From contig NC_069002.1 of assembly GCF_001194135.2 (NCBI RefSeq), forward strand, positions 8,019,267 through 8,078,679: a stretch of DNA of 59,413 nt. Direction: 5' to 3'. Positions 11,849-12,185 of this stretch are shown one piece after another. The position numbers and the translations under genes were made by a program. The DNA is from Octopus bimaculoides (taxonomy: Eukaryota). Each line of letters begins with the position of its first letter. Positions within the stretch are counted from its first letter, which is position 1. Under the pieces are notes generated by a model. The model was not told where the DNA came from. It saw only the letters and a list, made by a program, of their open reading frames with translations, and did not search any database.

Positions 11849-12044
11849 CCGACATCCACATATATACACGCGTGTCTGGTGACTGACTTTCAGCACAAGG
11901 AAAAACTTTTAGCGCGAAATACAACCAGTTAAACGAATGTACCTAGAGGCGATAATATTTATTGATTTTTTGTTTTTCCTCCTGCAAAACATTGCTAGCA
12001 GCCGTATATTAACAGGTATGATATAAAGAAATTTTGGGTAATCT

Positions 12045-12050
12045 ACTTAC
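12045..12050 (-). other. 5' splice donor (CAG|GTAAGT), phase 0, after Gln45 of the octopressin precursor
   Basis: Minus strand reads ...CCG AGA CAG|GTAAGTAG, a perfect consensus. Read-through hits a stop at 12009-12011 with none of the neurophysin Cys pattern. Confidence 0.93.
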
Positions 12051-12185
12051 CTGTCTCGGTTCTGTTGCAGGTATATTACTTCTTTTACCACCAATAGGGC
12101 AGCTTGTCCAGAAACAACCCTTTACAAGGGGTAAAAGTACCACAACGATTAAAATCGCAAATACACTACTTTTTATACTCGACAT
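12051..12185 (-). CDS. OP: Octopressin (oxytocin/vasopressin-family) precursor, first coding exon: signal peptide, nonapeptide and linker; neurophysin exons not in visible sequence
   Basis: ATG at 12185 gives MSSIKSSVFAILIVVVLLPLVKG-CFWTSCPIG-GKR-SNIPATEPRQ (45 codons). Hydrophobic signal peptide, Cys1-Cys6 nonapeptide (12090-12116) matching octopressin, amidation/dibasic site GKR (12081-12089), then donor GTAAGT at 12050-12045. The track ORF 12009-12221 starts at an upstream TTG and reads through the donor. Confidence 0.96.

Follow-up and report, generated by a model that had tools for sequence, protein, structure and literature searches.

The window described here is a 59,413-nt stretch of Octopus bimaculoides DNA (NCBI RefSeq assembly GCF_001194135.2, contig NC_069002.1, positions 8,019,267 to 8,078,679 of the forward strand). 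Its minus strand carries the first coding exon of the precursor of octopressin, a nonapeptide of the vasopressin/oxytocin (VP/OT) family. By translation, positions 12185-12051 (-) code for MSSIKSSVFAILIVVVLLPLVKG-CFWTSCPIG-GKR-SNIPATEPRQ, that is, a signal peptide, octopressin, a processing site and ten neurophysin residues. The start codon at 12185-12183 opens a 23-residue signal peptide, MSSIKSSVFAILIVVVLLPLVKG (12117-12185), whose cleavage site is placed by the position of the mature peptide and whose residues 1-23 are the same in the precursors P0005, P0017 and P0009. The nonapeptide CFWTSCPIG (12090-12116) is octopressin according to Table 1 of PMC7181382. It is followed by GKR (12081-12089), the amidation donor Gly and dibasic cleavage site kept in all aligned VP/OT precursors, and by SNIPATEPRQ (12051-12080), the last codons of the exon and the first ten residues of neurophysin. 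The hallmark of the VP/OT family, a signal peptide directly before C-x-x-x-x-C-P-x-G and GKR, is found at 12185-12081 (-).

The exon ends with CCG AGA CAG/GTAAGT. The last exon base is 12051, and GTAAGT at 12050-12045 is the phase-0 donor of intron 1, in agreement with the consensus CAG/GTAAGT. Translated over 12185-12009 (-), the DNA reads MSSIKSSVFAILIVVVLLPLVKGCFWTSCPIGGKRSNIPATEPRQ and then, past the donor, VSRLPKISLYHTC, a read-through of 13 codons that closes with the stop codon at 12011-12009. A preliminary description of this DNA had pointed to the phase-0 junction and to the lack of neurophysin in the read-through, and both observations hold. Two copies of the string CAGGTAAGT are present in the window, with 0.34 expected, which alone is weak evidence. 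Decisive for the donor are two comparisons that stop exactly at 12051: the identity with the precursors P0005 and P0017, and the alignment with L002, a 961-nt Logan contig from run SRR16213284. L002 (nt 1-476) is colinear with window 12563-12051 and halts at the donor, and what is left of the contig falls on exons 2 and 3a of the O. vulgaris gene. A chance GT at 12050 was rejected as an explanation, since the transcript alignment ends there. The GT at 12050 is shown to be a genuine, used, phase-0 donor at the position conserved in the family.

On the three-way alignment, the transcribed exon 1 consists of the 5′ untranslated region (UTR) and the first 135 nt of coding sequence and extends over 12051-12563 (-), the 5′ limit being a minimum fixed by transcript support. 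The 5′ UTR (12186-12563) is at least 378 nt long and has an internal TA/CA microsatellite; by alignment and blastn, its conservation in O. vulgaris is well above that of the surrounding intergenic DNA. A repeat scan near exon 1 detected TA/CA microsatellites only. The 5′ part of intron 1 occupies 1-12050 (-) and leaves the window at its start. Microsatellites and repeats resembling short interspersed nuclear elements (SINEs) are abundant in this part of the intron, which also has two assembly gaps.

No neurophysin coding sequence was found in the window by tblastn with bovine neurophysin queries or by a regular expression for the Cys motif. A profile hidden Markov model (HMM), built from nine non-cephalopod VP/OT precursors taken from the supplement of PMC8557429 and applied without filters to the window translated in six frames, matched exon 1 only (E=2e-6). 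The second-best match (7789-7920, E=0.5) was rejected as a translated microsatellite. There are 19 runs of N in the window, 8,412 N in total, and two of these (8286-8805 and 10063-10541) are within 12 kb downstream of the donor. The absence of a neurophysin exon is explained by the position of the window, the start of which falls, by O. vulgaris coordinates, about 17 kb inside a 58-kb intron.

The complete precursor was reached at the protein level. A word-index protein search with the 45-aa exon 1 peptide gave no match, and an exact look-up of the exon 1 read-through open reading frame (ORF) gave no record. An exhaustive phmmer search with the exon 1 peptide gave P0002, a 147-aa precursor of the sepiatocin type, and P0002 as query gave P0005 (CAI9739012.1), a 146-aa protein annotated as 'hormone conopressin/conophysin [Octopus vulgaris]'. 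The first 45 residues of P0005 are those of the window exon, and the protein then continues as ...EPRQ CMSCGPNGEGQC.... P0005 is encoded in L001, a 115-kb segment of O. vulgaris OX597835.1 (GCA_951406725.2), and in L002, which has the entire ORF. The octopressin precursor cloned from O. vulgaris (Q76DN1; BAC82435.1, BAC84977.1) is P0017, which the genome annotation lists as CAI9739011.1. P0017 matches PF00184 (Hormone_5) with E=7.5e-20 and has 14 Cys in its 100-aa neurophysin. Residues 1-45 of exon 1 are identical in P0005, in P0017 and in the O. bimaculoides proteins XP_014771397.1 and XP_014771402.1. In a representative library, the 75-aa P0003 looks like a further read-through ORF from a first exon, in this case that of a CFITNCPPG precursor of arthropod type; its ...GGKRSNLPPLNQE is succeeded by sequence unlike neurophysin.

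The O. vulgaris locus provides the remaining exons. BLAST and direct reading place the exon 1 coding sequence at L001 10001-10135, and the same donor, CAG/GTAAGT, follows at 10136-10141. Intron 1 is 57,908 bp in length, is in phase 0 and ends at the acceptor ...TTTTTTTTTTCTCTTTTAATTACTAG/TGTATGTCTTGC. The residues of P0005 and P0017 past Q45 (EPRQ/CMSCGPNG) are coded in OX597835.1 57,908 bp downstream, behind the acceptor ...TTAATTACTAG. Exon 2 (68044-68245) is 202 nt long and is followed by the phase-1 donor GAA T/GTAAGT. Exon 3a is at 81467-81570. A paralogous alternative last exon, 3b, is at 105009-105109, and it is there that the gene range of the annotation stops. All the junctions obey the GT-AG rule and show a polypyrimidine tract. 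Spliced in silico, exons 1, 2 and 3a give P0005 exactly, and exons 1, 2 and 3b give P0017 exactly. Exon 1 is about 58 kb from exon 2, exon 2 about 13 kb from exon 3a, and 3a is 23.4 kb from 3b. The first and last coding exons span 71-95 kb, and the octopressin ATG is 95.1 kb from the exon 3b stop.

The boundaries of exon 2 recur in other cephalopods. In O. sinensis, the 59-kb L003 (GCA_006345805.1) has exons 2, 3a and 3b with the boundaries seen in O. vulgaris. Exon 3b (L001 105009-105109, L003 49226-49326) codes for (S)SCFTTDRCDRENHRSMAMQKLLEIRDGIYYKK and a stop, and exon 3a for SACSSNARCNTSGGRSKTLKDLLLILNKMYRDKN and a stop. The cDNAs cloned in 2003 use 3b and the Logan contig uses 3a; the 3a tail resembles that of the sepiatocin precursor, and the 3b tail that of an Argonauta cephalotocin-like precursor. 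In a decapodiform genomic contig (L004), a sepiatocin-type exon 2 of 202 nt is situated between ...tttcag/ and /gtaagc. Exon 2 of mammalian AVP is also 202 bp. The O. sinensis RefSeq proteins XP_029649633.1 and XP_029649634.1 (100 and 99 aa) start at an internal Met of exon 2 and have no hormone first exon, and the hormone part is unannotated there because these models begin inside exon 2. In the orthologous loci, exon 1 is shown to be spliced to exon 2, whose 202 nt code for the neurophysin core, and, across a phase-1 intron, to 3a or 3b. The corresponding exons of O. bimaculoides are beyond the start of the window because of the great length of intron 1, which is 57.9 kb in O. vulgaris.

Window 334-19483 is colinear, in reverse orientation, with L001 27362-619 at 83-89% identity on both sides of exon 1, and the intron 1 portion corresponds to L001 10136-27362. 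Noncoding DNA is about 85% identical between the window and O. vulgaris, and over the aligned stretch of intron 1 the window is compressed to about 0.68 of the O. vulgaris length. The 135-nt coding sequence of exon 1 has three differences from O. vulgaris, all synonymous, and the donor hexamer is identical. Because of this colinearity, the alignment identifies the window as the orthologous locus of the annotated O. vulgaris octopressin gene.

Genes of the VP/OT family have three coding exons, with phase-0 and then phase-1 introns at conserved positions (PMC10532012, PMC2656470). The octopus introns fit this pattern: the donor in the window follows codon 45, intron 1 is in phase 0 directly before the first neurophysin Cys, intron 2 is in phase 1, and both introns are GT-AG in L001 and L003. 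The site of intron 1 is that of vertebrate AVP/OXT (octopus ...EPRQ/CMSCGP, bovine ...ELRQ/CLPCGP), in line with the homology proposed in the preliminary description. In vertebrate AVP/OXT and in the amphioxus, echinoderm and Ciona genes, exon 1 likewise encodes the signal peptide, nonapeptide, GKR and about 9-10 neurophysin residues, and the Cys-rich core is likewise in a central exon, followed by a phase-1 intron and a C-terminal exon. The octopus gene differs from these in having introns of 13-58 kb rather than 0.1-5 kb, no copeptin and two alternative last exons, and in that one set of neurophysin exons apparently serves two hormones in place of two complete genes. The decapodiform sepiatocin precursor (AHH31546.1 cluster) has the orthologous peptide type CFWTTCPIG, an approximately 60% identical neurophysin, a 202-nt exon 2 with the octopus boundaries and a C-terminal tail resembling octopus exon 3a. 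The octopus gene retains the ancestral intron positions and phases.

The second octopus hormone of the family, cephalotocin, has the same neurophysin. The 90%-identity cluster of P0005 includes an O. bimaculoides protein, XP_014771381.1 (P0008), with the sequence MSQNCFAIVQLLFVLFTVCSFFIATTDG-CYFRNCPIG-GKR-ATPMSEQGSNQK; this is cephalotocin followed by exactly the neurophysin of the octopressin product. The peptide of the cephalotocin first exon is MSQNCFAIVQ...CYFRNCPIGGKRATPMSEQGSNQK. A query built from the first exon of P0008 with genomic exons 2 and 3b matches cloned O. vulgaris cephalotocin (P0013; Q76DN0; BAC82436.1, BAC84978.1, BAD93373.1) at 99% over its full length. Between cloned cephalotocin and cloned octopressin the 100-residue neurophysin is the same, and all differences fall in the part coded by exon 1. 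The NCBI isoforms X1-X4 belong to one O. bimaculoides gene of 110.6 kb and combine a cephalotocin or an octopressin first exon with 3a or 3b, the cephalotocin exon being annotated as an alternative 5′ exon of that gene (P0008, P0013, P0016). Exon 2 is present in a single copy in the 115 kb of L001 and in the 59 kb of L003. For two first exons joined to common downstream exons, the evidence at the protein level is strong, in the identical neurophysins and isoforms X1-X4; the comparison at the nucleotide level covered two primers designed on AB162925, described below. In a further clone, 'cephalotocin-del' (BAC82437.1, 86 aa), the first exon of cephalotocin is joined to exon 3b in a shifted frame, with 33 of 34 residues matching O. 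sinensis. It is an exact skip of exon 2, and the exon boundaries were thus already visible in the clones of 2003.

These structures are at odds with the literature. A passage of a 2020 review (PMC7181382), citing Kanda et al. (2003; BBRC 309:743), restates that the coding regions of octopressin and cephalotocin are single-exon in O. vulgaris. The preliminary description had referred to this claim and had held that the locus contradicts it; the claim is indeed on record in that passage, and the O. vulgaris and O. sinensis loci are both split, the spliced products of the O. vulgaris locus being equal to P0005 and P0017. The published 'single exon' genes and the genomic exons specify the same proteins: spliced, the exons give the deposited octopressin exactly and the deposited cephalotocin at 99%. 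The difference is that the genomic coding region is broken by two introns and spans 71-95 kb. The uninterrupted genomic ORF from Met to stop expected of the intronless genes published in 2003 is absent at this locus: the read-through stops after 13 codons, and the remaining coding sequence in O. vulgaris is 57.9 kb and 71-95 kb downstream. The single-exon statement cannot apply to the octopressin locus in O. bimaculoides, O. vulgaris or O. sinensis. The product reported in 2003 was most likely amplified from an intronless template, because ordinary genomic PCR cannot span 71-95 kb and a product of cDNA size implies such a template; this would be carried-over cDNA or plasmid, or a processed retrocopy. 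Contamination is the simpler explanation, because the two published 'genes' would each need an intact retrocopy of their own, and because the only contig on record that codes for P0017 is the chromosome with the split gene and none is on record for P0013.

We put a probability of about 0.9 on the overall explanation, in which the window exon is the first exon of an octopressin/neurophysin gene with a used donor, the 2003 product came from an intronless template, and a second first exon serves cephalotocin. Several points weigh against it. L002 was taken as a transcript on grounds of its colinearity with exons alone, the locus and cloned precursor that show use of the donor are those of O. vulgaris, and the neurophysin exons are outside the window. 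The search for an intronless copy covered individual loci and sequence records, and this scope, together with the single-exon coding regions of Kanda et al. as restated in that passage of PMC7181382, leaves a little room for a functional octopressin gene that is intronless and located elsewhere, the window exon being a relic or orphan duplicate. Such an arrangement is very improbable. On either flank of the exon the window is syntenic with the gene annotated in O. vulgaris, and on this ground an orphan duplicate, which the preliminary description had named as the finding that would overturn its reading, was rejected. The exon is under purifying selection, as its three synonymous differences indicate, its donor is unchanged in O. 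vulgaris, and the spliced products of the locus equal the cloned cDNAs exactly. The one contig on record for P0017 is that of the split gene, with none for P0013, and the two published 'genes' would require two separate intact retrocopies. Nor does the window itself have the features of a processed retrocopy: exon 1 is there alone, and its flanks are orthologous promoter and intron DNA colinear with O. vulgaris. The conflict might otherwise reflect a species difference, as the preliminary description also considered, with the gene split in O. bimaculoides but without introns in O. vulgaris or in its Japanese form, for which the present name is O. sinensis. The window does come from a different species than L001, with noncoding identity of only about 85%, but this suggestion did not survive and merits next to no credence, because the loci of O. 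vulgaris (GCA_951406725.2) and O. sinensis (GCA_006345805.1) are both split, at the same boundaries; 'cephalotocin-del', a clone of 2003, is moreover itself an exon-skip product.

A separate question is whether the two hormones share one gene. Sequence comparison suggests that the window exon is probably one of two alternative hormone-coding first exons, and we consider it likely that octopressin and cephalotocin of octopods belong to one locus of about 110 kb, with two first exons, one exon for the neurophysin core and a duplicated pair of last exons. The alternative is two separate genes: cephalotocin would have neurophysin exons of its own, homogenized by gene conversion or strong selection, the joint NCBI isoforms would be chimeric, and the window exon would be the sole first exon of its gene. 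In its favour, the cephalotocin first exon was not found in the 47 kb upstream of the octopressin exon within the window (which has 8.4 kb of gaps window-wide), nor in L001, where 10 kb upstream is covered. The single-gene arrangement itself rests on identical proteins, one local copy of exon 2 and an automated gene model. Vertebrate VP and OT are separate genes that keep their second exons 95-100% identical between paralogues (PMC2656470), so neurophysin identity alone is no proof of sharing, and reviews describe a gene duplication (PMC7181382, PMC10172372). Against two genes, the identity spans the entire 100-aa neurophysin including the tail, beyond exon 2, and there is no second exon 2, 3a or 3b within 115 kb. 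Substitutions in exon 3b that are specific to O. bimaculoides appear in the isoforms of both hormones, though the gene model makes that so by construction. A gene predictor would also be expected to pick the nearer exons of cephalotocin itself, if these existed. Finally, the gene ranges in which the cephalotocin exon is annotated (110.6 kb in O. bimaculoides, 126.6 kb in Argonauta) exceed the distance between the octopressin ATG and the exon 3b stop in O. vulgaris, which is 95.1 kb. On balance, separate genes appear rather unlikely.

If octopressin and cephalotocin do share one locus, the proposed order is [cephalotocin exon 1] ... [octopressin exon 1] – 58 kb – [exon 2] – 13 kb – [exon 3a] – 23 kb – [exon 3b]. 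The two first exons would be mutually exclusive and linked to promoters. Each would code for a separate signal peptide and presumably have a separate promoter, and both would be spliced to the same neurophysin exons. The choice of first exon would then set the hormone of a neuron and leave the carrier protein unchanged, and the second hormone would have arisen by exon duplication, not gene duplication. In the Lymnaea FMRFamide gene and in vertebrate calcitonin/CGRP, cell-specific choice of exons within one transcription unit determines the peptide. The octopus locus would differ from these systems in that what varies is exon 1, together with its signal peptide and, presumably, its promoter, and what stays constant is the carrier protein. 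Literature searches found no case of peptide choice by alternative exons within the VP/OT family.

Other features of the window are of repetitive or mobile type. An ORF of 191 aa at 47775-48350 (-) has a weak match to the GIY-YIG nuclease (E=0.0023, below the Pfam cut-off), and a truncated paralogous copy is found 1.4 kb away at 49208-49516 (-). The ORF probably represents part of a mobile element, possibly a Penelope-like one. SINE-like repeats about 240 nt long, each adjoining a TA/CA microsatellite, are dispersed over the window at 11283-11523, 35702-35940, 49587-49880, 58024-58242 and other places. L001 has many copies of this repeat, one of them directly upstream of exon 3b (104664-104905). 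TA/CA/GA microsatellites pervade the window and, with the N runs, give it the appearance of a draft short-read octopus assembly.

The identity of the two neurophysins has a practical consequence. Expression of 'cephalotocin' mRNA in the gastric ganglion was reported from quantitative PCR, whereas earlier work had found octopressin mRNA only, and the authors could not reconcile the two results (PMC5736919). The two 20-nt primers of that study, designed on AB162925, match exon 2 exactly (L001 68044-68063 and 68167-68186). The assay cannot tell cephalotocin from octopressin, because exon 2 is also present in octopressin transcripts, and the placement of the primers in this exon may explain the discrepancy. 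Probes, primers and antibodies directed at neurophysin do not discriminate between the two hormones.

Gene models in the public databases (NCBI Gnomon, ENA) already implied the split structure, and what is new is its recognition and its reconciliation with the literature. No paper describing introns, shared exons or alternative first exons for octopressin or cephalotocin was found, in a search that left most subscription journals outside its reach, and papers of 2020 and 2023 (PMC7181382, PMC10172372) still describe single exons or gene duplication. The intron as such is ordinary for the family; of interest are the conflict with published accounts and the probable origin of two hormones from one locus. 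The finding corrects the claim, held for two decades and repeated in the 2020 review, that the octopus VP/OT genes are the only intronless members of the family. If the neurophysin exons are shared, the parallel drawn between VP/OT gene duplication in cephalopods and vertebrates needs revision for octopods, and the octopus would be a clear case of hormone diversification through alternative first exons. With one locus for both hormones, the hormone identity of a neuron would be set by the choice of promoter and first exon according to cell type, and not by separate genes.
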